IMG/VR virus record: IMGVR_UViG_3300005977_000052
Span: 1 to 10,762 of that record
Direction: 5' to 3' (one strand)
Length of the DNA stretch: 10,762 nucleotides
The notes below the pieces were generated by a model, which was not told the DNA's origin, made no database searches, and saw nothing but the letters and a program-made list of their open reading frames with translations. Positions 1-10,762 of this stretch are shown here, piece after piece (position 1 is the stretch's first letter; each line of letters opens with the position of its first letter). A program made the position numbers and the translations under genes.

Positions 1-510
1 CATACCTGGGACTATTCCGTGGATTTCCTCGAAGCCAAGAAAGTCCTCATTAACGCATACAAACAGCTGTTTGATCTAAACTTGATGCCCTACGAGGCGT
101 ACGTTGCCATCCTCCTCATACAACTAACCAACGGATCCAGAATCAAAGAAGCGATAAGGGCGTTTAAGACGTTCGTAGAGTCAGGGCAAAGAGAGTTCCA
201 GTTAGAGGCTGAGAAGCACGGTAACACAAGGGTCTTCATTATTCATGAGGTTATCAGGAACAGGCTAGCGTATAAATCGATACTGACAATCTCTGACGAC
301 AAACTAGAAGCCAGAATAAGGATGTTTGCACTGAAGTACCTGAAATGTAACACACATTCTCTTCGTTATGCACTAATCTCCTTCCTTGCAAAAAACGGCA
401 CAGACCCTGCAATCATCGCGAAGATAACGGGACACAGAGATTACAGATATATTGTAGGGTACACACAGACAAAAGACGCCATCGATATTTTGCGTAAGCT
501 TTCTTCCTAG
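1..510 (+). CDS. Tyrosine recombinase/integrase, catalytic domain; possibly 5'-truncated by the window edge
   Basis: Complete R-K-HxxR-H-Y catalytic set in the 163-aa ORF: GSR(41)IKEA, K66, H113SLR116, TGH139, Y148. Frame 1 is open from base 1 (HTWDYS-VDFLE), so the GTG at 19 may not be the real start. Confidence 0.92.
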   Translation, partial: HTWDYSVDFLEAKKVLINAYKQLFDLNLMPYEAYVAILLIQLTNGSRIKEAIRAFKTFVESGQREFQLEAEKHGNTRVFIIHEVIRNRLAYKSILTISDDKLEARIRMFALKYLKCNTHSLRYALISFLAKNGTDPAIIAKITGHRDYRYIVGYTQTKDAIDILRKLSS

Positions 511-565
511 CTATCTTGACTACTTTTTTAAGCATATAATTCATATTATATAATCAGGTGAAAAG

Positions 566-778
566 ATGGTGGAACTAAAGTTACGCTGGAGGATTAAGAC
601 AACTAAGAAAAACGGTAAAATATATCCAATATACTATATAAGCGTCCCAGGACGTTCAGCTATATTTCTGTTGGATTATGAGCCATACCTAGACCCAGTA
701 AACAAGGTAATCGTTTTTAAACCTAAACAGACTAGCACCCAACAGAACAGTACCCAAGACCAACCCCAAAGTCAATAA
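566..778 (+). CDS. Small putative DNA-binding protein, AbrB/SpoVT-like swapped-hairpin regulator
   Basis: Pattern RIKTTKKNGKIYPIYYISVP...KVIVFKP resembles the AbrB beta-hairpin (basic turn, YxIxIP, C-terminal IVxKP strand). Low-complexity Q/S/T tail. TATA-like TTTTTAAG near 525-532 and RBS AGGTG at 556-560. Confidence 0.55.
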   Translation: MVELKLRWRIKTTKKNGKIYPIYYISVPGRSAIFLLDYEPYLDPVNKVIVFKPKQTSTQQNSTQDQPQSQ

Positions 779-806
779 TTCTTTTCTTTTTCCCTTCTCT
801 CTTTTT

Positions 807-822
807 AACAGCTGTTTTAAGA
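807..822. repeat. Palindromic motif copy AACAGCTGTT-TTAAGA
   Basis: Seen directly; follows the T-rich terminator of the 566-778 gene. Confidence 0.9.
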
Positions 823-836
823 TGCTCTGCTCGTAG

Positions 837-871
837 TTCCCGTCTAACTTGTTGTGCAGAAATTTTAAATA
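837..871 (+). promoter_or_regulatory. Operator-like palindrome plus BRE/TATA promoter, copy 1
   Basis: TTCCCGTCTAAC-TT-GTTGTGCAGAAA (837-862), then TTTAAATA (864-871), 24 nt before ATG 895 (leaderless geometry). Confidence 0.85.
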
Positions 872-894
872 CCAGTCCTAACAATAGTTAAACA

Positions 895-1086
895 ATGACG
901 CCCCAGGAAGAAATAATAAAGGAAATCATAAATATGTTAGAAAAGGACTTCAGCCAGTTGCAGAAAATCGTCTATGAGATTATTAATACGAAAAATAATT
1001 TGGACAGGAAGAAGCTAGGAGAAGCATATTTTATCACACAGAAAATCGATATGGAACTATATAGATTAATTCTCTCTGTTACCTAA
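895..1086 (+). CDS. Hypothetical 63-aa helical protein; paralogue of the C-terminal domain of ORF 1611-2048
   Basis: Has its own promoter and terminator. Shares LE..L..VYEI...DR.K..EAYF..Q.I...L with the 145-aa protein. Confidence 0.85.
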   Translation: MTPQEEIIKEIINMLEKDFSQLQKIVYEIINTKNNLDRKKLGEAYFITQKIDMELYRLILSVT

Positions 1087-1103
1087 AAGCCAACCCGTTT
1101 TTT
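1087..1103 (+). terminator. Conserved oligo-T terminator AAGCCAACCCGTTTTTT
   Basis: Directly after the stop codon. Identical copy at 2047-2063 and a variant at 1423-1442. Archaeal terminators are oligo-T tracts. Confidence 0.75.
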
Positions 1104-1118
1104 ATTCACTTATTCTGC

Positions 1119-1132
1119 AAAACAGCTGTTTT
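1119..1132. repeat. Perfect 14-bp palindrome AAAACAGCTGTTTT
   Basis: Seen directly. Confidence 0.95.
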
Positions 1133-1161
1133 AGAGTTTCATTGGATGCCAAGCCCGTTAG

Positions 1162-1196
1162 TTTCAGCCTAACAAGTTGGACAGAAAACTTAAATA
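1162..1196 (+). promoter_or_regulatory. Operator-like palindrome plus BRE/TATA promoter, copy 2
   Basis: TTTCAGCCTAAC-AA-GTTGGACAGAAA (1162-1187), then CTTAAATA (1189-1196). The downstream TAAATACCAGTC is shared with copy 1. Confidence 0.88.
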
Positions 1197-1229
1197 CCAG
1201 TCTTAACACAATAGTAATGAGGAGGAAAA

Positions 1230-1418
1230 ATGATAGTAGAAGTTAAGAAAAAAGAAGATATAGTACAATTTTTAATTAATTCAAACGACACAGTAGAAAT
1301 TCCTATGAAAGAATTTTTGCAATGTATTAAGATTAAAAAAGAACTAGGTTATGGCTCTTCTGCAGAAAGAGAAGCGATTTTCAATTATATTTTATATAAA
1401 AAGTGTACCTTAACATAG
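1230..1418 (+). CDS. Hypothetical 62-aa protein
   Basis: Strong RBS GAGGAGG just upstream, own promoter, and terminator at 1423-1442. Confidence 0.8.
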   Translation: MIVEVKKKEDIVQFLINSNDTVEIPMKEFLQCIKIKKELGYGSSAEREAIFNYILYKKCTLT

Positions 1419-1422
1419 ACAC

Positions 1423-1442
1423 AAACCAATCCGTTTTTTTTT
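1423..1442 (+). terminator. Terminator variant AAACCAATCCGTTTTTTTTT
   Basis: Variant of the 1087/2047 terminator, 4 nt after the stop codon. Confidence 0.7.
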
Positions 1443-1457
1443 ATCCTTTCTCCTAAC

Positions 1458-1469
1458 AAACAGCTGTTT
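1458..1469. repeat. Palindrome AAACAGCTGTTT
   Basis: Seen directly; followed by TAAAGA. Confidence 0.95.
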
Positions 1470-1544
1470 TAAAGATGTGTTCGTCGTACCCAGCCCTCGA
1501 CCTGCTCCTTGTTTTGTGAGGCAAGGTCTGTCGTTCGTTCGCCA

Positions 1545-1579
1545 TTTCAGCCTAACTAGTTAGACAGAAACTTTATATA
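1545..1579 (+). promoter_or_regulatory. Operator-like palindrome plus BRE/TATA promoter, copy 3 (most symmetric)
   Basis: TTTCAGCCTAAC-TA-GTTAGACAGAAA (1545-1570) with perfect core CTAACTAGTTAG, then TTTATATA (1572-1579). Confidence 0.9.
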
Positions 1580-1610
1580 TCATGAAAGCAAAATGTATAC
1601 TGGGTAAAAT

Positions 1611-2048
1611 ATGGCAAAGTTAAGTAGGAGGGAATTCCAGAAAATGAAAAAGAGAGCAATAGTACAACTCAGGCATCTTGTGCTAGGGTATTATATTGGA
1701 ACGTTTACTGACGAGAACTGTATTAGGATGAACATGGGTTACGATCAAATCGAAGTTATAAATGTTCCTCAGGTACCGTTTCGTACTAAAAATGGGAATC
1801 TTGTTGTAATCGAAGCTAGAATAGTAGTTACCGGAAACGGAAGTGATAGCATCAACATTTGTGCTGGTGATGTGGAGTTTTTAGAAAATTACATAAACGT
1901 CTTAAAGGAACTTGTTTATGAGATCCAAAGATCGATGCGTGTTCCTAGTTCATTTGATAGAGAGAAAATAAAAGAAGCATATTTCGCTGTGCAAAATATT
2001 CAGAGGTATCTGGAAAAGTTATACCCGTTCGCCGAGGCTGATTCATAA
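1611..2048 (+). CDS. Hypothetical 145-aa two-domain protein (basic N-terminal/beta region plus helical C-terminal domain shared with ORF 895-1086)
   Basis: Own promoter and terminator; internal paralogy with the 63-aa ORF. Confidence 0.88.
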   Translation: MAKLSRREFQKMKKRAIVQLRHLVLGYYIGTFTDENCIRMNMGYDQIEVINVPQVPFRTKNGNLVVIEARIVVTGNGSDSINICAGDVEFLENYINVLKELVYEIQRSMRVPSSFDREKIKEAYFAVQNIQRYLEKLYPFAEADS

Positions 2049-2065
2049 GCCAACCCGTTTTTTTT
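2047..2065 (+). terminator. Conserved oligo-T terminator AAGCCAACCCGTTTTTTTT
   Basis: 17 nt identical to 1087-1103; overlaps the stop codon. Confidence 0.75.
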
Positions 2066-2134
2066 GTTTCCTATTTCTCTCAAGCAGTTGTTAAGACCCC
2101 TTTCTTCTCTCCTTCCACACCTACCTCCCAACAA

Positions 2135-2169
2135 ACTTCTCCTAACTCGTTATGTAGAAAACTTATATA
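2135..2169 (+). promoter_or_regulatory. Operator-like palindrome plus BRE/TATA promoter, copy 4
   Basis: ACTTCTCCTAAC-TC-GTTATGTAGAAA (2135-2160), then CTTATATA (2162-2169). A degenerate AGCAGTTGTTAAGA motif lies upstream at 2083-2096. Confidence 0.82.
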
Positions 2170-2201
2170 GCTGAGTTAGCACACATATATAATGACCAAA
2201 T

Positions 2202-2762
2202 ATGTCCTCTCCACATCCACAGGTTAAATCAAATCCTAAGTCAGATCAAACTACTAATTCTACTCTAACGTGGGAGGAGATCTTACGGGCTACAAGAATA
2301 GATAAACAGCATATAGATTTTGCAATAGCTCATATCGATACTGCACCAGATATGCCGTATGAATTCATTTACAGCAAATATATCCCTTCGGATTTCAAAG
2401 TCTTCCATCCCACTAGTGTTGCGGTTAGCGGGGCAGGAGGAGTGATAGGGTCTATTTTAGCTTTAAGACATGCCAGAGCAGTTAAGTACTTTGTAACAAC
2501 CCAAGAAGTACTGAATTCCAACGACAAATCTCCATTATTTCTAGCGAAGTATGCTTTAGAATTATTAGAGAAAAAATACAGAGATGTAGAAATAATTACA
2601 ATAGACCTTGGTGAGTTCGAGAAAATAAAGATACTGTTAAGTTATGGCGGGATATATATATCAGGGTTGCCTAATGAGATTATCGTTGAGATTGCCCAAT
2701 TAGCGGGTTTTGGAAGATTATGGCATTACTCGCCTATTCATCGAAAGTTCTACGTGTTCTAA
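2202..2762 (+). CDS. Hypothetical protein, possibly a degenerate DnaC/IstB-like P-loop fold
   Basis: Order of motifs VAVSGAGGVIGS (Walker A-like, no Lys), YFVTTQEVL and KYRDVEIITIDLG (Walker B-like) resembles DnaC/IstB by eye only. The CDS is solid; the fold call is weak. Confidence 0.5.
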   Translation: MSSPHPQVKSNPKSDQTTNSTLTWEEILRATRIDKQHIDFAIAHIDTAPDMPYEFIYSKYIPSDFKVFHPTSVAVSGAGGVIGSILALRHARAVKYFVTTQEVLNSNDKSPLFLAKYALELLEKKYRDVEIITIDLGEFEKIKILLSYGGIYISGLPNEIIVEIAQLAGFGRLWHYSPIHRKFYVF

Positions 2763-2779
2763 ATTTCGAGGTGACAACA

Positions 2780-3523
2780 GTGAACGAACAACAGTTTGAG
2801 CCAGAAATAAAAAAATTCAAATGGTTATTGAATAGGGGTTACATTACTCCTAAGGAGCTGGAGTTTTACAGCAACTTTTATCAAATCGAAACGACAACAA
2901 TAGTGAATTTTAAAGGGCATGATGTACTAACTCCGTTGTTTATACTAGCAAAACCCAGCCAATTTAATGACATAAAAAAAGAATTACCCCAAGCAGAAAT
3001 AGCAGACCCGATTTCAAGAAAGTTCCCTGTGGTTTCCTTACTAAGTCTAGAAAAGTTTATCAATTCCCTTGTAAATCTGAAAATACCCTACTTGTTCTTC
3101 TCATTATTCTTACATAATTCGTATAATCCTCCACAACAAGTTCACATACTTTTGTCCGCTTTAATTGAACTAGCAAACATTTCAAATAGACACATCATTA
3201 AACCTTACAACATAAAAATAAAACCTTTGCCGTTAGAAGAGCCTATTCCAGTAAGTAATCAACTGTACAAAATCATTTGCCATTACAAGAAAATGCTAGG
3301 TGAGAGAGTTGAGTGTGACGAGGGAGAATGGTGGAAATATAATCTCTGGGGAAAGGATACTATCAGTACCAGTACAGTTGACAGAAAAGTGATAGAGAAA
3401 TTAGCAGTACAATATAACATATCGCCCATATGTGTTCATTACATAATATATTATAACAAAAACATATGCGGACTTTCGACTGATATCATAAATAAAATAA
3501 AATCCCATCTCTCTTCTTCTTAA
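2780..3523 (+). CDS. Hypothetical protein, possible inactive HhH-GPD/AGOG-like C-terminal fold
   Basis: Preferred start is the in-frame GTG 2780 with RBS GAGGTGA at 2768-2774, which avoids overlap with the upstream gene. Contains PIPVSNQL and EKLAVQYNISPICVHYIIY segments. T-tract follows the stop. Confidence 0.5.
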   Translation: MNEQQFEPEIKKFKWLLNRGYITPKELEFYSNFYQIETTTIVNFKGHDVLTPLFILAKPSQFNDIKKELPQAEIADPISRKFPVVSLLSLEKFINSLVNLKIPYLFFSLFLHNSYNPPQQVHILLSALIELANISNRHIIKPYNIKIKPLPLEEPIPVSNQLYKIICHYKKMLGERVECDEGEWWKYNLWGKDTISTSTVDRKVIEKLAVQYNISPICVHYIIYYNKNICGLSTDIINKIKSHLSSS

Positions 3524-3533
3524 TTTTTTCCCT

Positions 3534-4055
3534 CTACATAGTATTCGTATTCTCCTTTCTCTCTCTTTTTGCTATCTTTTTTGCATCTATCACTTCTACT
3601 ACCCCTTCTTCTTCCAGATATTCTAGCACTGCGTCACTATCATCTATCACTATCGCCTTATCTTGGTCATATTTTTCCATTAGCTCCTTTACAACGATTC
3701 TCTTAAATTCATGATCTTTCCTGAAGTCCTTCTCGCCCCTTAGCACGACCTCGTTCGGCTCTATCCCTATCTCTGACAGTTGTTTGAGAGTAACTTCACG
3801 CTGTTTTTCTGAACGACCGCTGACTATGACGATAACTTCTGGCTTTTCCTCCTCAATTAATCGTTTGACAAACTTGATAACTTCCCACTTAGGTTCGTCC
3901 AAGTTCATGAACCTCGGTGATTGATAACATTCCCAAAACACACGGTCGGGTTTCCAAGATAATGTTTTCTTGTCTCCTCTGGATATCTTCTCGCATTCGT
4001 TCCACCTGGCAGAAGTGTCGAAAAGCGTGCCATCCATATCCAAGACCAGCATCAT
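3534..4055 (-). CDS. HAD-superfamily phosphatase, polynucleotide kinase 3'-phosphatase (PNKP C-terminal)-like
   Basis: Motif I LVLDMDGTL, motif II IVSGR, motif III RKDHEFK, motif IV VIDDS; the LRGEKDFRKD segment is typical of this subfamily. Confidence 0.9.
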   Translation of the reverse strand: MMLVLDMDGTLFDTSARWNECEKISRGDKKTLSWKPDRVFWECYQSPRFMNLDEPKWEVIKFVKRLIEEEKPEVIVIVSGRSEKQREVTLKQLSEIGIEPNEVVLRGEKDFRKDHEFKRIVVKELMEKYDQDKAIVIDDSDAVLEYLEEEGVVEVIDAKKIAKRERKENTNTM

Positions 4056-4630
4056 TTTGCTCCACTCCCTGGTTCCTTAAAACCTAGTATTGTTATTTTC
4101 CCGTTCTCTTCTTTGAACTCTAACTCCTTAGCTTCTCCCTCGACACTGTACACAAAGTAAAACGTTTTGAGACCCTTACCGTCTCTTTCCCACTCCAGTT
4201 TACTACATTTCCCATCAAATCTACTATGGAAGTAGTCTATCGCCTCTTGGTCGTTCTGTTCTTTTGCTATTTTTTCTAACGTTGCAGGGTCAAACGGTTG
4301 ATAGAATAAGTAGACCTTCTTATTGCCTTTTCCATCATCAAAAAAGAAGTATATTCCGTATTTGAACAGGTTAAGGTTTGACGTCGTTATTATTTCACGG
4401 TGTTTCATGATATATTCGTTGTCCGCAACGGCAGAAATATAAAGTGTATCATGTCCGTCACCTATGCCTATACATAGCAGGTTTGTGTGTACGATTTTGT
4501 CGTTTTTGATCCTGTCCATTCTCACATAGAAAGAGATATACGCTACACCTATGACAGGTTTAGCCTGGGGCATGAACCCTTCCACACGCACTATGAAGTA
4601 TTTGTCTATATCGACTTTCGAGTTTACCAT
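4052..4630 (-). CDS. Hypothetical beta-rich protein (about 192 aa), co-transcribed with the HAD gene
   Basis: Preferred start is ATG 4630, 23 nt after a minus-strand TATA TTTTTAAA (4653-4660). Its stop overlaps the HAD start (ATGA, 4052-4055). Confidence 0.8.
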   Translation of the reverse strand: MVNSKVDIDKYFIVRVEGFMPQAKPVIGVAYISFYVRMDRIKNDKIVHTNLLCIGIGDGHDTLYISAVADNEYIMKHREIITTSNLNLFKYGIYFFFDDGKGNKKVYLFYQPFDPATLEKIAKEQNDQEAIDYFHSRFDGKCSKLEWERDGKGLKTFYFVYSVEGEAKELEFKEENGKITILGFKEPGSGAK

Positions 4631-4672
4631 GTTAGATTCTTCGCATGATAGCTTTAAAAAGCAGACTGACAA

Positions 4673-4715
4673 AATGAACGGTAAGCCTCGACCTTTAGGG
4701 TGGGGAGGAGGTTAG
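4673..4715 (+). mobile_element. IS200/IS605-type right-end hairpin remnant
   Basis: AAGCCTCGACCTTTAGGGTGGGGAGGAGGTTAG resembles the Sulfolobales IS605/tnpB right end as I recall it (CCTCGCCCTTTAGGGCGGGGAGGAAGTCAG). Similar copy at 8882-8922. Confidence 0.7.
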
Positions 4716-4720
4716 TTTTC

Positions 4721-4736
4721 AAACATCTGTTTAAGA
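4721..4736. repeat. Palindrome variant AAACATCTGTTT-AAGA
   Basis: One mismatch to the consensus; lies between divergent promoters. Confidence 0.8.
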
Positions 4737-4786
4737 GCAAATCCCTTCTGGTTGGTTTTTAAACCTTTTCTGTGGAAAGTAAAGAT

Positions 4787-5074
4787 ATGAAACCCGAGTG
4801 TAAAGTTCTGTTAAAAGCGTTTGAGATTCTTTCTACAATCCAAAGCAAATACGATAATGATTTTCCGGAGATGTTATCGTACATGTACCTTGTGGTCAAA
4901 GGGTACTGGACTGTTAACAATAACGGAGAAACCGTAGAAGTGGAAAAACCACCGTTTTCGAGTATAGCCCTCTTTAACGCCATGAAGGAGATCACAGAAA
5001 GAGTCAGGAACGGTGCTACAATTGAAGAAATTGCAAACGAAAAGGAACTATGCGGTGATGTTGAGGAGATATGA
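4787..5074 (+). CDS. Hypothetical protein (about 95 aa), first gene of a five-gene operon
   Basis: Preferred start is ATG 4787, 24 nt after TATA TTTTTAAA (4756-4763). ATGA overlap with the next gene. Confidence 0.8.
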   Translation: MKPECKVLLKAFEILSTIQSKYDNDFPEMLSYMYLVVKGYWTVNNNGETVEVEKPPFSSIALFNAMKEITERVRNGATIEEIANEKELCGDVEEI

Positions 5075-5487
5075 CAGTAGCAAATTCAACCGTAATAAAT
5101 GCGTTACCACCCTTTTTCTACACCCAAGTCTTTCTTGTTGACGTTGCAGGTGGATTCGTTGTACTGACAATAATTGAGCTATTTCTGCTAAGAAACAGCA
5201 GTTTGACACATCTGCGACTTGCCTTGCCGTTCCTAACGTTTTCCATCGGCTTTACTCTTATTTCCATATACCTTTCCCCATACGTAACATATAACCCTGT
5301 GTACACCTCGCCGTACAATGTCACATATAGAATTACACCTTACAGTACCGACGGTGCCGTACTCCTATACATCAGTATCGCAGTCCTTGCCATGGCTATA
5401 GCATACTTTGTTTATGCGTTTGCTGTTGATGTATTACACATTTCCTTTGGCAGTAGTAGTGATAATGACGGTTATTTCATACCTTAG
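5071..5487 (+). CDS. Membrane protein with about 3 TM helices
   Basis: Three long hydrophobic segments; N-x-S/T sequons (NST, NSS, NVT); RBS GAGGAG. Confidence 0.8.
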   Translation: MTVANSTVINALPPFFYTQVFLVDVAGGFVVLTIIELFLLRNSSLTHLRLALPFLTFSIGFTLISIYLSPYVTYNPVYTSPYNVTYRITPYSTDGAVLLYISIAVLAMAIAYFVYAFAVDVLHISFGSSSDNDGYFIP

Positions 5488-5490
5488 GGG

Positions 5491-6078
5491 GTGATACCAG
5501 TGTTACTGTTTAAGAAGAAGAAAAAAACATCACCAATCGTCTATAAGGACTATGACGCCTTATTACTTTTGCCTCCAGCGTTAGTCAGCATTGATAAAAA
5601 AACGAAGGTAATAGAAAACAACGGTGTACATGTCGCGATAATGTATTCTGAAACTAGCGGTATTTCCGTGATGATGGACTTACCCACAGATTTCCTGAAA
5701 TTATACTATAAGATGACCACACAGATAAACCAGGGAAACCCGAGTGATAGGATAGTCTATTTTGCAATGGTTTACATTTCTCCGGAAGAGTATGCAAGAA
5801 AGAGAGAGAAAATACTAAAAATTGGTGCGAACGCTAAAAGGAAGTTTTTCGTCTACCCAAGGTGGATCTGGCTCATCCTGGAACGTTATAACGACGCACT
5901 GAATTATTTCGTCATAAACAAATTTGAAGACGACGACCCTGGAAACTTCTCGAAGGAATTTGACACGTTCGGTGCCGTTGGGCTTACCTATAATAATTAC
6001 TTCATTTTCGCCAGCGTTGCGAGGAAGGACTACATAGATTCCGTAAATAAACGGAGATCCCTCGGTCTCTGGTGGTGA
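5491..6078 (+). CDS. Hypothetical protein, 195 aa
   Basis: Long ORF tightly packed in the operon; GTG start; poly-Lys near the N-terminus. Confidence 0.75.
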   Translation: MIPVLLFKKKKKTSPIVYKDYDALLLLPPALVSIDKKTKVIENNGVHVAIMYSETSGISVMMDLPTDFLKLYYKMTTQINQGNPSDRIVYFAMVYISPEEYARKREKILKIGANAKRKFFVYPRWIWLILERYNDALNYFVINKFEDDDPGNFSKEFDTFGAVGLTYNNYFIFASVARKDYIDSVNKRRSLGLWW

Positions 6079-6605
6079 TAATGTCTCTCTCGCATTTGCA
6101 ATCACTCGTTGGGAAAAACGTAATACTGTTCAACTACCTACGTAATGTATTCAAGAATAAGATATACAAAATAGCCGAAAGTGAGGGTGAATACACTCTT
6201 CATGTCGATATGGGGATACCTAGCAGGTTACAGCACAGGATCGCACATCCCGGCATTTACTTTGTCACAGATGTCATGATACAAGGTACTAACTATGCGA
6301 TTTATCTGAAAAAACAAGTAGACCTAAAGAAGTTTGCACTAGTAAGCTCGATAGCAACGTCTGAGTATTACATTTCCTCGTATCGTAAAGTACAGTATAA
6401 AACAAATGGAGGGTACACATTTGACGCTTTAGAATTCGATATAGGTGGGTTTCACCACCTTGTGTTTAATTACAACAAATGTATTATAGCGAAAGTGAAA
6501 AAGTCAGGTCAGAGACGCATCGCCGTATGTCTAGGTGATAGTGTAGTTATAGATGATATAAACAATGTTACGTGTAGTGACTGTGAGTGGTTTAGTGTAG
6601 AGTGA
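6072..6605 (+). CDS. Hypothetical protein with Cys-containing C-terminus (CSDC); real start may be ATG 6081
   Basis: Long ORF in the operon; GGTGGTGA RBS-like sequence before 6081. Confidence 0.75.
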   Translation: MVIMSLSHLQSLVGKNVILFNYLRNVFKNKIYKIAESEGEYTLHVDMGIPSRLQHRIAHPGIYFVTDVMIQGTNYAIYLKKQVDLKKFALVSSIATSEYYISSYRKVQYKTNGGYTFDALEFDIGGFHHLVFNYNKCIIAKVKKSGQRRIAVCLGDSVVIDDINNVTCSDCEWFSVE

Positions 6606-6616
6606 GGTGGTAGACA

Positions 6617-7273
6617 ATGGCATATAATAAAAAACAAAACGAAGTCCCTACTCCTGAACAATTCCAGTTCATTGTCTATAAAGAGGTATGCATGGGGGAC
6701 AAAAGCCTTGTACATCCTACTTTGGCTATAGAGAGGCTGAACACTGTAATGCTTACCTATTACACCGACGAGATAGAAGAGTTATGGAGGGAATTAGTCC
6801 TAAAAAGATATGAGAATGCGACATCTGAGGACGAACTAAGGCAGATACTAAAGATCGGTTGCGATATAATGTTTATCGTAATGAACGCGTCTGGCGAGGA
6901 CGTTAAGTCGTTAGTAACGAAAATACTGAACAGCACAAGGAAAAAACATCTGTTTTATGTTAACGAAGAAGGACTAGTTGCTGAAAGCTCGTATCTTATA
7001 GACGTGCTGACAAGGTTTGTGAACCCCAACGGGTTCGACGTGTTGACTGTCCTAAGCATACTAAAGGACGTGCAAATTAGGACGGCTACTATGATTAGCA
7101 GTATTAAGGGGACGTCGCTGTATCAGTCGCTTGTAAGTGAACTAGGAATAGATGAAAATGTCATTGAGAAAAAATGCACGGCGAAGTACTATAGGGAATG
7201 CGTAACTGAGAAGAAAACACAATTGCTGAAAGCGTTGCAGTTTATCAGGATGAATATAAATATTCCGCGTTAA
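6617..7273 (+). CDS. Hypothetical helical protein, 218 aa
   Basis: RBS GAGGTGG upstream; last gene of the operon. Confidence 0.8.
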   Translation: MAYNKKQNEVPTPEQFQFIVYKEVCMGDKSLVHPTLAIERLNTVMLTYYTDEIEELWRELVLKRYENATSEDELRQILKIGCDIMFIVMNASGEDVKSLVTKILNSTRKKHLFYVNEEGLVAESSYLIDVLTRFVNPNGFDVLTVLSILKDVQIRTATMISSIKGTSLYQSLVSELGIDENVIEKKCTAKYYRECVTEKKTQLLKALQFIRMNINIPR

Positions 7274-7336
7274 AGCTACAAGGATTTTCCAGTTCTAAAA
7301 GAGATCTGTACTCTTGGGCGAAAGATAAAATAATTT

Positions 7337-7353
7337 AAACAGCTGTTTTAAGA
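7337..7353. repeat. Palindrome AAACAGCTGTTT-TAAGA
   Basis: Seen directly. Confidence 0.95.
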
Positions 7354-7393
7354 CCTTATCCTTCGCTCCGTCGCCGTCCACCAATCACCTTGT

Positions 7394-7430
7394 TTACTGC
7401 CTAATTGGTTGAGGAAGAGAGTTTTAAATA
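7394..7430 (+). promoter_or_regulatory. Degenerate operator-like palindrome plus TATA, copy 5
   Basis: TTACTGCCTAAT-TG-GTTGAGGAAGAG (7394-7419), then TTTAAATA (7423-7430). Spacing is 1-2 nt longer than in copies 1-4. Confidence 0.6.
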
Positions 7431-7461
7431 TCGGTTTGGCATAAAAATATACTGACCTAAA

Positions 7462-8850
7462 ATGAGGATAGATATTCCAAAAAGTGACGGTACTACAATT
7501 TCGCTGTATCCATTAGATGAATATCTCTCTCATGTCCTTTTTGATCACTTCGTTTTAACTGGAGACTTTGTACGTCACGAAGAATTGTCAGACGAATATA
7601 ACGGATCATTGAAATTAGTTGACTATAAGCCTATGGCAACATTTAGTCCCGAGAATTCGCAAGGATATATGCCATTTATAATTAAAATGAGTACTTCACC
7701 CGAGGAATACTACAGTCTCGGATACCCAAAGGGAATAGTGCATTGTGGAGAAAAAACCATATACCTCAAATTAGGTGAGCTTAGCAGGAAAATCAAAAAA
7801 GTATACGATTACACAATTAGTAAGAGGATTGTCCATGTTAAAATAATACGAGGTAGTACAACTAAAGATTTTGATTTTGATGTGGTCATATTAAAGGACG
7901 GGTACTCTGCTGATCCGCGTTTCAAAGATGAGCGTATATCAGCTAAGAAAAAAATAAAAGAATTAATTCAAATGTTAGAATCTGAGATTCCTACAATCCG
8001 AGAAGATTTCAGGATCGAATATAATTTTTACACTTATCCAGATAATCCACTCCTATACCCACACATTTTACTCATCCCTAAATTGGTTATAAAGGAAATT
8101 TCCGATTTCTTATTATCTGAGTACGAACAAACTTATGGCATTGTTACAAAACTACCAGCAGAATTTGTACCTAATGAAAATGTTCATAGTCCTGAGTTGC
8201 TGAAATTCCTTAATAAGATACCATTTGAACTTTTTACCAAAGCGGTTATAGGCTTGTATGCCTCTCATCCTGCTGTACTATTACCCGAAGGTGACTATTC
8301 ACAATATCTCACGGGCAATGAGCGTGTGGTCAATATCAACCTAGCGAAAAACGTTGTCGTTGTAATAGTTTTTGGTAATTCTCAGGAACAACAAAACGTA
8401 GAGCAGAATAAGGAGGAAGAAAATAGAAATACTGAGGAAAATAAAGTAGAAAAAGTACCTAATAATGTTGTCGAAGGATTAGGTAAGGAAATCCAGTCTA
8501 TTTATGAATCAATAATTCAAGACGATTCAATAAACGTTGAGAAAAAGAAACATCGACTTAAGACACTGAACGAAGCCTTAGACGAACTAGGCAAAGCAAT
8601 ATTGGATGCATTAAAAAGTCAAACCCCGCTGAACGCTAATGAGCTAAGAAAATATACAGAAGATATAGTTAAAAGTGCTGGACTGTTATATACTAATAAT
8701 TTTAAGTATTACCTCAGTTATTATGAACGTTCTTTAAACGAAACTGCAGAGCTTGAAGTACTAGCTACACTTTTGGATTCTATTGGGAAAACAATGTATG
8801 ATATAGATAAAAAAATAAAAGAATATAATTCGCTACAATTAACATATTAA
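7462..8850 (+). CDS. Hypothetical 462-aa protein: globular N-terminus, E/N/K-rich linker, helical or coiled-coil C-terminus
   Basis: Longest ORF, with its own promoter. Linker QEQQNVEQNKEEENRNTEENKVEK. No family recognised. Confidence 0.85.
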   Translation: MRIDIPKSDGTTISLYPLDEYLSHVLFDHFVLTGDFVRHEELSDEYNGSLKLVDYKPMATFSPENSQGYMPFIIKMSTSPEEYYSLGYPKGIVHCGEKTIYLKLGELSRKIKKVYDYTISKRIVHVKIIRGSTTKDFDFDVVILKDGYSADPRFKDERISAKKKIKELIQMLESEIPTIREDFRIEYNFYTYPDNPLLYPHILLIPKLVIKEISDFLLSEYEQTYGIVTKLPAEFVPNENVHSPELLKFLNKIPFELFTKAVIGLYASHPAVLLPEGDYSQYLTGNERVVNINLAKNVVVVIVFGNSQEQQNVEQNKEEENRNTEENKVEKVPNNVVEGLGKEIQSIYESIIQDDSINVEKKKHRLKTLNEALDELGKAILDALKSQTPLNANELRKYTEDIVKSAGLLYTNNFKYYLSYYERSLNETAELEVLATLLDSIGKTMYDIDKKIKEYNSLQLTY

Positions 8851-8881
8851 ATTCAAAACTTTTTACAAAACAGGTAGTTAA

Positions 8882-8922
8882 GGGAGTGGAAAGCCTCGCC
8901 TTCAAGGTGGGGAGGAAGTCAG
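8882..8922 (+). mobile_element. Minimal IS200/IS605-type hairpin element
   Basis: GTTAA|GGGAGTGGAAAGCCTCGCCTTCAAGGTGGGGAGGAAGTCAG: stem CCTCGCC/GGTGGGG ending in GGAAGTCAG; lies between convergent genes. Confidence 0.75.
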
Positions 8923-8935
8923 CTTAAAAAAGAAT

Positions 8936-9184
8936 TTATCTTATATTGTATTTGTTTAGTTTTTTGGATAGTTCGTCCAAAAGACGTTTATCCATCAGTA
9001 AAATGTCTGTAATGTCATCAATATATTCGTTCACTATGTCTTCTAGATCAGTACGATCAAACTCCACATCATCAACGTCAACGTCAACATAATCTTTGAA
9101 GTCGTTGCATATGATCCCTTCTTGCTTATCGCAATCACAATTGTCCTCTAATCTACTATATTTTATGAACACTGGTACTTTCAT
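8936..9184 (-). CDS. Small highly acidic hypothetical protein, 82 aa
   Basis: 23 D/E in 82 aa by hand count. Own promoter TTTATATA (9217-9224, minus strand) and GTGAG RBS-like sequence. Confidence 0.85.
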   Translation of the reverse strand: MKVPVFIKYSRLEDNCDCDKQEGIICNDFKDYVDVDVDDVEFDRTDLEDIVNEYIDDITDILLMDKRLLDELSKKLNKYNIR

Positions 9185-9211
9185 TTAGCTCACACTATAA
9201 TACTATCAAAA

Positions 9212-9241
9212 ACTGGTATATAAACCTCAAACAGCTGTTTG
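9212..9241 (-). promoter_or_regulatory. Promoter with palindrome CAAACAGCTGTTTG next to the BRE/TATA
   Basis: Minus strand reads CAAACAGCTGTTTG-AGG-TTTATATA-CCAGT. The TATA-CCAGT context matches promoter copies 1 and 2. Confidence 0.8.
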
Positions 9242-9259
9242 TGAGAGCGGAATACGGGT

Positions 9260-9295
9260 CTGATCCCCCTGGGAGGGTGAGGTTTCCCGCTCATT
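9260..9295 (-). mobile_element. Possible third, decayed IS605-type end remnant
   Basis: Minus strand AATGAGCGGGAAACCTCACCCTCCCAGGGGGATCAG aligns loosely with AATGAACGGTAAGCCTCGACC...GTTAG at 4673-4715. Confidence 0.4.
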
Positions 9296-9959
9296 AACTT
9301 CCATTTAAAACTACGGAAAATATCGTAGTGTTTTGTGCATATATAACTAGAGTATTATCACATATGTACGATTTTACTTCTCCACCATCATGTGCCACTA
9401 TTATGCTTCCATTTATTGGGTAGTATAATGTCTGTTCTATCAGTGCTGTTCCATTTATTGTGATTTTTCCTTTTTGCACTGTTATATGCCCGTTATATAG
9501 TATCTGCCAGCCGTATTCCGATACACCATACGATGAGTTGTATATTACAGTAAAACTAGGATTTACGATAGGATATACCGTACCTGCAGGAGCGAATCCG
9601 CTTATAGATAAGACAGCAGTTTGAGTACTGTACAGGTAGAATGTAATTACATAGGGAGAGTTTTGTGAAATGGCAATAGTAGGATCTGGTGCCGTAACGT
9701 TTACTATAACATATTCGTGCGGTTTTAGGATTATTATGTTTTGGTACCAACGATGACTGTTAATTACCGGCACCAATACATATGTTTTATTGGTAGGGTT
9801 TTGTATGCATATCGTTAGCACGTTGTACTTATTTATTTCTCCTACGTCGTAGAAATCCAGTACCTTTGCATGCAATTGTGGTTGATAGAAAAAAATAGAA
9901 AACGTGAAAAGGGATGGTATTATAACTACTAACATTAGTATGATTTCAAACTTTTGCAT
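9294..9959 (-). CDS. Membrane-anchored extracellular beta-rich protein
   Basis: N-terminal TM/signal segment; many N-glycosylation sequons (NKT, NVT, NSS, NGT, NGS, NTT); 14-nt overlap with the upstream GT-C-like gene. Confidence 0.8.
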   Translation of the reverse strand: MQKFEIILMLVVIIPSLFTFSIFFYQPQLHAKVLDFYDVGEINKYNVLTICIQNPTNKTYVLVPVINSHRWYQNIIILKPHEYVIVNVTAPDPTIAISQNSPYVITFYLYSTQTAVLSISGFAPAGTVYPIVNPSFTVIYNSSYGVSEYGWQILYNGHITVQKGKITINGTALIEQTLYYPINGSIIVAHDGGEVKSYICDNTLVIYAQNTTIFSVVLNGS

Positions 9960-10762
9960 CTTTCATCATCCATACTGCATATTGTAATGCAAAATAAAAT
10001 GTAAAATATCCCAAATCTCTAAAAGAGAATATCCATATTAACGCCGGAAGACCCCAAGCTAATTCTTTCTTATTATTATATAGTAGGATTAATGCAAAAA
10101 GAGACACCTCAAGTACGGTATACACGAATGAGGGGATAGGTAAGCCGAACGCAGTAAGGAGTGAAAACGAAACGCCCTGCTGTGCAACAGGTTGTGTAAT
10201 AGTTATAACGGACGCAAGGTATTGCTTTGAAATGAAGGGTATTGATGAGAGCAGTAGCGGTAACGCGAATTCTATTATCTTTCTAAGTTTCTGTCTTTCA
10301 AATTTAATTAGAAGAATAGCTATCAGTATCGCAAACTGTTTTACGTCTGCAGAGATTCCTAGGAGCAGGTATCTGAATCTCTCATTAAGTAGGGCAAGAA
10401 ACGCAATAGAATATGCAAAAAGGTTCAGTTCTTGCCCTGTCGCAAAATCATATGAAAGTGCGGGAAATAGGAAAAAAGATGCGATGAAAGCGTTTTCGTG
10501 TCTTTTGAGGAAGGAATACGTGAAAGCTAAAACAGCTGTTATTACGTTTACTGTTTCAAGGTTATGCAAAACCGCAACGCTGATGAACGATAATGGGGGG
10601 TAAATATAGACGGTCGGCAGAAATGAGTTTGACGTAGTGCCGGTAACAACGTTATACGGAACGTGATATATGAAAAATGCTTTAGTCATTGAGTAAAGGT
10701 ACGGGTTTTTTCCGTCGAGGAATAAGTGTGACGCGTATAATATTGTTGCTTCTTCATCCGTG
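9946..10762 (-). CDS. Multi-pass membrane protein, GT-C fold glycosyltransferase-like (GT87/DUF2029-type); 5'-truncated
   Basis: Frame stays open beyond ATG 10689 to the window end and reads TDEEATILYASHLFLDGKNPYLYS-MTK. The TDE, G.NPY and Y.YPPL motifs, a later VKQF and multiple TM helices are typical of GT-C enzymes. Confidence 0.65.
   Translation of the reverse strand, partial: TDEEATILYASHLFLDGKNPYLYSMTKAFFIYHVPYNVVTGTTSNSFLPTVYIYPPLSFISVAVLHNLETVNVITAVLAFTYSFLKRHENAFIASFFLFPALSYDFATGQELNLFAYSIAFLALLNERFRYLLLGISADVKQFAILIAILLIKFERQKLRKIIEFALPLLLSSIPFISKQYLASVITITQPVAQQGVSFSLLTAFGLPIPSFVYTVLEVSLFALILLYNNKKELAWGLPALIWIFSFRDLGYFTFYFALQYAVWMMKDAKV

Follow-up and report, generated by a model that had tools for sequence, protein, structure and literature searches.

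Copies of the palindrome in the window

The stretch of DNA analyzed here (the window) was matched by identity to the complete 10,762-bp contig of IMG/VR record IMGVR_UViG_3300005977_000052, and the element under study is a 12-bp palindrome, AAACAGCTGTTT, that recurs along it both between and within genes. The window aligned with SMV3, SMV4 and SMV1 at 82-87% identity across ~40-57% of its length, and no plasmid match was found for it. These Sulfolobus monocaudaviruses (SMVs) are large tailed spindle viruses, filed under Bicaudaviridae, with hot-spring archaea as hosts; to our knowledge, next to nothing has been established about regulation in the large tailed spindle viruses (SMV, ATV, ATSV), the majority of whose genes have no assigned function. 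The palindrome is a genuine, family-specific viral cis-element, with no published description in the literature examined. From its architecture and placement, it is probably the operator of a putative dimeric global regulator, most likely a repressor acting at core promoters.

The window was rescanned for perfect copies (n = 5; starting at 61, 1120, 1458, 7337 and 9229), one-mismatch copies (n = 5; 806, 4721, 5193, 6944 and 10530) and weaker matches. All of the perfect and one-mismatch positions given by an earlier sequence-only reading were correct; a two-mismatch match at 9611 was missing from its list. In the features below, L-numbers are further viral contigs compared (SMV4 is L003).

61-72: perfect copy in the integrase coding sequence (CDS), where K-Q-L-F is written AAA CAG CTG TTT; kept in SMV1/3/4, ATSV, L059 and L066
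806-817: one-mismatch copy TAACAGCTGTTT between ORF70 and ORF63, 77 nt ahead of the latter; the variable cassette region has its left edge here
1120-1131: perfect copy, ~17 nt past a T-tract terminator; ORF62 lies 98 nt downstream
1458-1469: perfect copy past a T-tract terminator, 141 nt upstream of ORF145; SMV4 homology starts here
2082-2093: decayed copy (3 mismatches) upstream of ORF186, at the position that the palindrome holds in a repeated intergenic module
4721-4732: hybrid-centre copy AAACATCTGTTT between divergent ORF206 (minus) and ORF95 (plus); right edge of the variable region
5193-5204: one-mismatch match in ORF138; not conserved in SMV1, SMV4, L007 or L014
6944-6955: hybrid-centre copy in ORF218 (K-H-L-F); conserved
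7337-7348: perfect copy upstream of ORF462; left repeat of a 1.9-kb insertion relative to SMV1
9229-9240: perfect copy, with 4 nt between it and the downstream TATA box of ORF82 (minus); repeat on the right side of the insertion relative to SMV1
9611-9622: two-mismatch match in ORF221 (minus); variable among relatives
10530-10541: one-mismatch copy AAACAGCTGTTA in ORF247 (minus); conserved

None of 200 dinucleotide shuffles of the window contained a perfect copy, and 11 matches with at most two mismatches were observed vs. a shuffle mean of 0.78 (maximum 4). Markov models of order 1-3 predicted 0.001-0.005 perfect copies per window, in keeping with the initial estimate of far fewer than one. 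The near-matches at 5193 and 9611 are probably chance matches, since neither is conserved among relatives, and 4721 and 6944 are regular hybrid variants (AAACATCTGTTT) rather than degraded copies. The copy at 2082, which had been called degenerate, does occupy the homologous slot of the repeated module; SMV3 has a one-mismatch orthologue of it and SMV4 a perfect one.

Anatomy of the element

Symmetric flanks (cTC/GAg; among intergenic sites, 80% have T at position -2 and 60% have C at -3) extend the full site to an 18-20 bp dyad, cTC-AAACA[G/T][C/A]TGTTT-GAg, with a strict 2-bp centre. The central positions are G or T followed by C or A only, every combination occurs, and 1-, 3- and 4-bp spacings are absent. 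Half-sites AAACAG and AAACAT combine freely at this fixed spacing: a sister AT-centre palindrome, AAACATATGTTT, and the hybrid centres AAACAGATGTTT and AAACATCTGTTT are also present in SMV1/3/4. Longer imperfect arms extend the symmetry, pyrimidine-rich (CTCTC) on the left and G/T-A-G-A on the right; the directional T(A)AGA-like tail noted earlier is present, not as a separate tail but as the right arm of this longer palindrome. Such dyad architecture typifies sites whose two halves are read by a homodimer, and binding by such a protein is predicted.

Genome-wide similarity between copies is limited to 12-20 bp, with no longer repeat unit of the type seen in miniature inverted-repeat transposable elements or repetitive extragenic palindromic sequences. 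Longer similarity is confined to duplicated terminator-palindrome-promoter modules in the cassette region.

Enrichment across related genomes

In the SMV1, SMV3 and SMV4 genomes AAACAGCTGTTT is the commonest 12-mer. Perfect GC-centre copies numbered 12 in SMV1, 12 in SMV3 and 14 in SMV4 vs. ~0.02 expected, AT-centre copies numbered 8-11 per genome, and 45-48 sites were found in each at one mismatch or fewer, ~one per kb. ATV contains 44 ACAGCTGT cores with A/T-rich flanks, and ATSV has the variant GAAA-ACACA[G/T][C/A]TGTGT-TTTC, located between TATA and start codons; both keep the SMV layout, with diverged flanks. SMV2 has only ~10 copies, chiefly at conserved structural-gene promoters.

The 18-mer with CTC/GAG flanks was found in 9 of 2.9 million IMG/VR contigs, 8 of the 9 being SMV-like and of low GC content. 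Among 185,579 reference genomes (species representatives) it had 34 matches, as single copies in unrelated organisms, mostly bacteria, and none in Sulfolobales; this host-genome comparison is for the 18-mer, not for the bare 12-mer. The S. islandicus conjugative plasmids pKEF9 and pHVE14, which match these viruses in GC content, contain 1 copy and none, respectively, and six otherwise unrelated viral contigs with the same integrase have 0-2 copies per 11-20 kb. Enrichment beyond the window, which the sequence-only reading had proposed as a check, is therefore clear in SMV1/3/4, and the 18-mer is not equally abundant in the host. A dyad-symmetric, replicon-wide and virus-specific site points to a protein-binding site, as had been suggested from the window and as is predicted here. 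One motif-poor virus with the same integrase (L065, IMGVR_UViG_3300027933_000009) has a palindrome of its own, GGGGGTACCCCC, in 4 copies within 16 kb, so other lineages may use different dispersed palindromes.

The binder could instead be a host protein, the palindrome being a co-opted site of a Sulfolobales transcription factor that reads, for example, AACA/TGTT half-sites as in the Ara-box. The Ara-box, AACATGTT, is a palindromic Sulfolobales cis-element upstream of BRE/TATA (BRE, B recognition element) and the activator site for sugar genes (PMC7264815). The half-sites of the viral palindrome resemble it, an ACA-KM-TGT core is common to Sulfolobus and Acidianus viruses, and the domain screens reported below found no viral binder. 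Unlike the palindrome, with its strict 2-bp centre, the Ara-box lacks a 2-bp centre, and it is not enriched in these viruses (0-2 copies); identity with the Ara-box was ruled out by these spacings and counts. The absence of the 18-mer from all Sulfolobales reference genomes, the fact that co-resident plasmids and other viruses of the same springs do not use the motif, and the lineage-specific flanks, which suggest co-evolution with a viral protein, also make a host factor rather unlikely.

A function in RNA, as a terminator or 5' untranslated-region hairpin, or as a restriction or methylation target (CAGCTG, CATATG) is highly improbable. Window copies do come after T-tracts, CAGCTG and CATATG are classical type II sites, and SMV3 and ATSV encode methyltransferases. 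Folded as RNA, the palindrome gave -4.2 kcal/mol (z = -0.07), no more stable than shuffles, which points to a function at the DNA level; the weak hairpin stands after the T-tract, not before it, and its position at core promoters is ahead of the predicted transcription start. Rfam and tRNA screens gave no match on the palindrome, the lone Rfam hit being far below its gathering score and beside the element. Restriction targets are normally avoided, whereas this site is ~500-fold enriched, its centres vary, and the hybrid CAGATG is non-palindromic.

Placement relative to promoters and terminators

Site density is ~6 times higher in intergenic than in coding DNA. AT-centre intergenic sites fall 0-20 nt upstream of a start codon in 16 of 28 cases (57%) vs. 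16% at random intergenic positions; for GC-centre sites the figure is 13 of 43 (30%) vs. the same 16% expected. Four layouts were distinguished. In layout I, TATA is followed after 5-10 nt by the site (mostly AT-centred), then by 10-14 nt with a GAGG-like Shine-Dalgarno sequence and ATG, as at the major capsid gene and other virion-module genes. In layout II, TTTTT is fused to the site so that TTTTTAAA is itself the TATA box, and ATG follows 11-24 nt past the site, at genes of leaderless type. Layout III has the site 4-6 nt upstream of TATA; the window copy at 9229 (ORF82) belongs here, and in one case, the SMV3 orthologue of that copy, the site lies between divergent TATA boxes. In layout IV the site comes 15-25 nt after a conserved T-tract terminator, and an early-type promoter follows 50-140 nt downstream, as with the window copies at 806, 1120, 1458, 2082 and 7337. 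The statement that the palindrome is not a simple promoter element thus describes the window; in SMV1/3/4, most intergenic copies hold fixed core-promoter positions, and these fixed positions make transcription control the best-supported primary role.

A conserved ~295-aa protein gene has the palindrome always fused to TATA (L010 3712-4608, SMV1 40775-41653, with homologues in SMV2-4 and L012).

The partner element downstream of layout-IV palindromes is an early-type promoter module, and the terminators stand upstream of them:

837-874, plus: early-type promoter module (inverted repeat CTAAC-NN-GTTrG, purine-rich BRE, TTAAATA-type TATA), upstream of ORF63
1162-1199: early-type module upstream of ORF62
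1545-1582: early-type module upstream of ORF145
2135-2172: early-type module upstream of ORF186
~7398-7435: early-type module upstream of ORF462
1087-1103, plus: terminator AAGCCAACCCG with T-tract, upstream of the palindrome; also at 1423-1439 and 2047-2063

The AAGCCAACCCG terminator is nearly identical past three consecutive small genes, and also follows small genes in SMV3/4, L007, L009 and L014. An early-gene 'regulatory sequence' that predicts anti-defence genes has been reported, with SMV3 gp46, gp47 and gp48 among the genes listed (Bhoobalan-Chitty et al., 2024, PMC11065993); these three are homologues of ORF186, probably ORF145, and ORF63 of the window. The CTAAC-NN-GTTrG module fits this regulatory sequence, which makes ORF63, ORF62, ORF145, ORF186 and ORF462 candidate early or anti-defence genes.

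Selection on copies inside genes

Four of the listed window copies lie within CDSs, including the integrase itself (61, 5193, 6944 and 10530), as the sequence-only reading had observed. Codon usage was used to separate the DNA motif from the peptide. CTG accounts for just 12.5% of Leu codons, yet in 8 of the 9 KQLF peptides found across SMV1/3/4 and the window the codons spell out the exact motif; the expectation for each is 1.4% (~4 independent loci). When synonymous codons were shuffled within each gene, SMV1 showed 12 perfect in-CDS sites vs. 1.2 in shuffles, and 25 vs. 5.4 at one mismatch or fewer; SMV3, SMV4 and the window were similar, and no shuffle reached the observed value.

The integrase allows the same comparison within one gene. 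AAA-CAG-CTG-TTT is present in 5 of 7 motif-rich viruses (the window, SMV1, SMV3, SMV4, L059, L066 and L057), and in L057 the motif ends in codon TAT. The codon CTG is retained in all 7 motif-rich viruses and synonymously replaced in 7 motif-poor ones: SMV2 and six other motif-poor viruses keep K-Q/E-L-F/Y, but with codons CTA, CTT, TTA, TTG or CAA; SMV2 has TTA in place of CTG. The ATV integrase site is AAACAGCTGTAC, which fits ATV's own shorter motif. In SMV4 the integrase is annotated as two CDSs (SMV4 38091-38820) with its translation frameshifted from ~residue 66; the break is just upstream of the palindrome copy, which is therefore tabulated as intergenic. Elsewhere in the window, the 6944 copy is identical in SMV1/3/4 and L014 while its flanks vary, and is broken in SMV2, including a CTG to TTG change; the 10530 copy, too, is unchanged across SMV1/3/4 and L014 but disrupted in SMV2. 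The in-CDS copies are kept by selection on the DNA itself, and the synonymous-site conservation that had been put forward as a check is borne out at the integrase, 6944 and 10530 and by the codon shuffles.

Sites are also spaced more evenly than random (coefficient of variation 0.58-0.75 vs. 0.97). When the intergenic sites were kept in place, those within CDSs were seen to occupy the gaps between them in SMV1 (P = 0.016) and SMV4 (P < 0.001), and not significantly in SMV3.

Even spacing and gap filling, at ~one site per kb, are features of a genome-organization or self-recognition tag, in which the copies would be nucleation sites for a virus-specific protein with a role in coating, bridging, partitioning, packaging or protecting the DNA, with promoter effects secondary. 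The nucleotide-level selection, a replicon-specific over-representation that extends to coding DNA (as for parS and other organizer sites), the lack of the extended motif in Sulfolobales reference genomes and the ParB-like protein encoded by ATV are all consistent with this. A pure tag would not be expected to recur at the same exact distances from TATA and start codons, or to have an intergenic density ~6 times that of coding DNA; the spacing test was not significant in SMV3, and the ATV ParB-like protein has no SMV homologue. We regard a tag as unlikely to be the primary function. A combined scheme is quite doubtful, in which the palindrome would be a 'self' mark whose even copies nucleate a virus-encoded spreading or bridging protein, giving a virus-specific chromatin or silencing system that times expression and possibly shields the DNA, the copies also acting as hot spots for the exchange of anti-defence cassettes beside the integrase. 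SMV1 is reported to be resistant to host CRISPR interference.

Predicted operator function

Under the preferred reading, that of a global operator, a homodimer would read half-sites of (c)TCAAACA plus G or T, 0 bp apart, giving centres GC, TA and GA/TC. At the TATA-to-start distance usual in Sulfolobus, layouts I and II would place the site between TATA and a transcription start that is predicted from TATA spacing only, and archaeal repressors bound between TATA and start block polymerase recruitment. Where the site overlies TATA or falls in the 5-25 bp TATA-to-start gap, a bound dimer would be expected to block recruitment of TBP/TFB or RNA polymerase, and the gene would stay off until the regulator was titrated or inactivated. 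TATA-overlapping and downstream sites of this kind are found at the virion and structural genes, mostly AT-centred at the structural genes, and at many others. A site abutting BRE/TATA upstream might confer repression or activation, and one 50-140 bp upstream of an early-type promoter, behind the preceding terminator as in the window, might serve activation, repression or insulation. In-gene copies would probably be auxiliary sites for cooperative binding, looping or spreading.

Small dimeric proteins of the ribbon-helix-helix (RHH) or winged helix-turn-helix (wHTH) type (SSV1 F55, SIRV1 SvtR, AFV6 AvtR) act on short repeats or palindromes at viral promoters; their operators at or downstream of TATA repress, and their regulons comprise a handful of promoters. 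The palindrome resembles their operators in its position at viral promoters and differs in its ~45 copies per genome, its selected intragenic copies and its variants across SMV, ATV and ATSV. Dispersed organizing sites (parS, Noc binding sites (NBS), SlmA binding sites (SBS) and the N15 dispersed centromeres) are 12-16 bp replicon-specific palindromes, genic and intergenic and dimer-bound, and the N15 centromeres also occur in promoters and affect expression. Unlike these, the palindrome is far denser and more tightly coupled to TATA, and Pfam scans of SMV proteins found no ParB/Noc/SlmA-type protein.

Literature searches on archaeal viruses returned no description of the exact 12-mer, its variants, or CAGCTG together with Sulfolobus; for SMV and ATV motifs they returned only the aCcr1-box and the early regulatory sequence, both different elements. 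The 9-bp aCcr1-box, A(T/G)G(A)TA(G)A(T/G)TACN, targets host cell-division genes, and ATV gp29 and SMV3 gp63 are viral homologues of aCcr1 (PMC9976878). Like the palindrome it is palindromic and lies between TATA and start codon, with an RHH binder encoded by the same viruses; its sequence is different, and reports of it do not describe a motif dispersed through viral genomes. The early regulatory sequence, described for SMV2-4, marks small early or anti-defence genes and consists of a BRE/TATA core and adjacent repeats (PMC11065993). The palindrome, in contrast, is set back another 20-80 bp upstream, and late promoters and CDSs have copies as well; it is unmentioned in that paper, and the string CAGCTG is absent from the supplements.

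Several results weigh against an operator of a viral regulator. Most window copies lie away from core-promoter positions, and the selected in-gene copies and over-even spacing are not obviously needed by a plain transcription factor. The transcription starts behind layouts I and II are predicted ones, and a co-opted host factor is a rival binder. The regulator is probably virus-encoded, yet Pfam and PHROGs screens of the window ORFs (open reading frames), small conserved SMV1 proteins and the motif-dense contig L010 found no binder whose presence tracks the motif, and the candidates considered in the next paragraph fared no better.

The domain screens yielded RHH, wHTH (HTH_45) and zipper-like proteins. 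The conserved CopG-like RHH protein (SMV3 gp63, ATV gp29) was rejected because it is the viral aCcr1 homologue and binds a different box. The ORF97 / ATV ORF98a family, whose gene is always followed closely by the best palindrome (20-22 bp) in SMV1/3/4, L010 and L012, was rejected because homologues occur in pKEF9 and pHVE14, plasmids without the motif. ORF70 adjoins the integrase in every motif-rich genome and is Lys/Arg-rich and all-beta with a Gln-rich tail; P0049, P0051 and P0052 are related proteins, and SMV1 gp33 is a homologue. In SMV2 (36942-37355) and some metagenomic relatives it occurs as a head-to-tail tandem fusion, which hints at a possible dimer. Its AF2 model (predicted local distance difference test score, pLDDT, 73) had no significant fold match in the PDB and no sequence match, and the fused tandem model had a pLDDT of 50; ORF70, guessed to be AbrB-like, could be placed in no fold or family, the models being uninformative. 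A TFB-like identity for the ~295-298-aa SMV protein had no Pfam support. ATV ORF326b is the ParB-like protein mentioned above; no homologue of it was found in SMV1-4 or the window, and the scans for ParB/Noc/SlmA-type domains were negative for the window proteins as well.

One cis-element at most promoters, with AT and GC versions sorting by promoter type, would offer a handle on a master regulator, and would also be useful for predicting early and late regulons and for engineering SMV1-based tools. The covariation of motif use with synonymous codons, seen in a gene that these viruses share, amounts to a natural experiment of unusual clarity, showing a viral DNA motif that constrains coding sequence.

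Module boundaries, recombination and the integrase

The genes of the window are as follows.

19-510: tyrosine integrase, C-terminal 163 aa
566-778: ORF70, small basic all-beta protein
895-1086: ORF63, homologue of SSV1 D-63, single-gene cassette
between ORF63 and ORF145: ORF62, single-gene cassette
1611-2048: ORF145, single-gene cassette, C-terminus D-63-like
2202-3523: homologues of ATV virion proteins ORF187 and ORF326a
3534-4055, minus: HAD/PNKP-type phosphatase
4787-7273: conserved gene block, function unknown
7462-8850: ORF462; in addition ORF82 (minus) and two membrane-protein genes (minus)

Compared with SMV1, the window has an insertion at 7349-9228 (ORF462 and ORF82) that is bordered exactly by the 7337 and 9229 copies, and the SMV1 empty site consists of left flank, one copy and right flank. 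The variable region after the integrase and ORF70 (806-4720) is also bounded by copies; it is absent from SMV1, and its length in relatives runs from ~0.1 to 4.2 kb. At 805-808, blocks of homology to SMV1, SMV4, L007 and L014 stop or start, homology to SMV1 and SMV2 restarts at 4711-4721, and SMV4 homology begins exactly at 1458. Over all pairwise comparisons, ends of intergenic high-scoring segment pairs were 2-3 times enriched within 3 bp of a copy, these endpoints being non-independent.

Such junctions would suit a recombination site, with cassettes gained, lost or swapped through the adjacent tyrosine integrase in an integron-like manner or through homologous or microhomology recombination. 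Integron attC sites, and a motif that Greve and colleagues reportedly found in 2004 at module borders of Sulfolobus conjugative plasmids, are likewise imperfect palindromes at cassette or module borders beside an integrase. The palindrome differs from both: copies occur within core promoters and CDSs, its distribution is not tracked by the integrase, and only some junctions are exact. The breakpoint enrichment is modest, and junctions off the copies occur in the same hot spots (e.g., L014 at 7278/8925). Some ~45 active palindromic sites, many of them in genes, would scramble the genome, whereas SMV1/3/4 are largely collinear, and the fixed promoter positions would go unexplained. Recombination is thus an improbable primary function.

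The integrase itself (~242 aa) is 73-90% identical across the SMVs, ATV, ATSV and the otherwise unrelated viral contigs L057-L068. That of SMV1 has 77% identity to ATV and 85% to ATSV, where capsid, ATPase and initiator-like proteins have 20-40%, and this suggests very strong constraint or horizontal exchange between virus lineages. The same integrase (77-90% identity) occurs in six viral contigs that lack the motif; being equally present in viruses without it, the integrase was ruled out as binder or partner by phyletic pattern, and these near-identical enzymes make a dedicated integrase recombination site unlikely. The part of the sequence-only reading that saw a module-boundary mark therefore holds for some boundaries, which lie exactly on copies, but not as a site dedicated to the integrase. 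We read crossover at copies as a side effect, an occasional module exchange and not the primary function, because the palindrome is the only sequence that most intergenic regions share. The exact motif-to-motif junctions suggest a route of exchange for candidate anti-defence cassettes.

Further observations in the window

ORF63 and the C-terminus of ORF145 are paralogous D-63-like domains with residual nucleotide similarity (repeat D10, 1000-1031 / 1953-1984). ORF462 is a mosaic: its N-terminal two thirds are ~50% identical to a 752-aa SMV1 protein at 2403-4661, a structural-module gene, and its C-terminus matches SMV3 gp35; the gene has gained an early-type promoter and is located in a rearrangement hot spot. 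A GC-rich element of ~32 nt, CCTTYARGGTGGGGAGGARG, was found in the window at 4692-4723 and 8899-8930, in SMV1 near 27118 and 48365, and in SMV3 near 22055. It folds weakly (z ~-1.6 to -2.0), has a sub-threshold Rfam match to HgcC (E = 0.09), and recurs beside palindrome copies and at gene ends.

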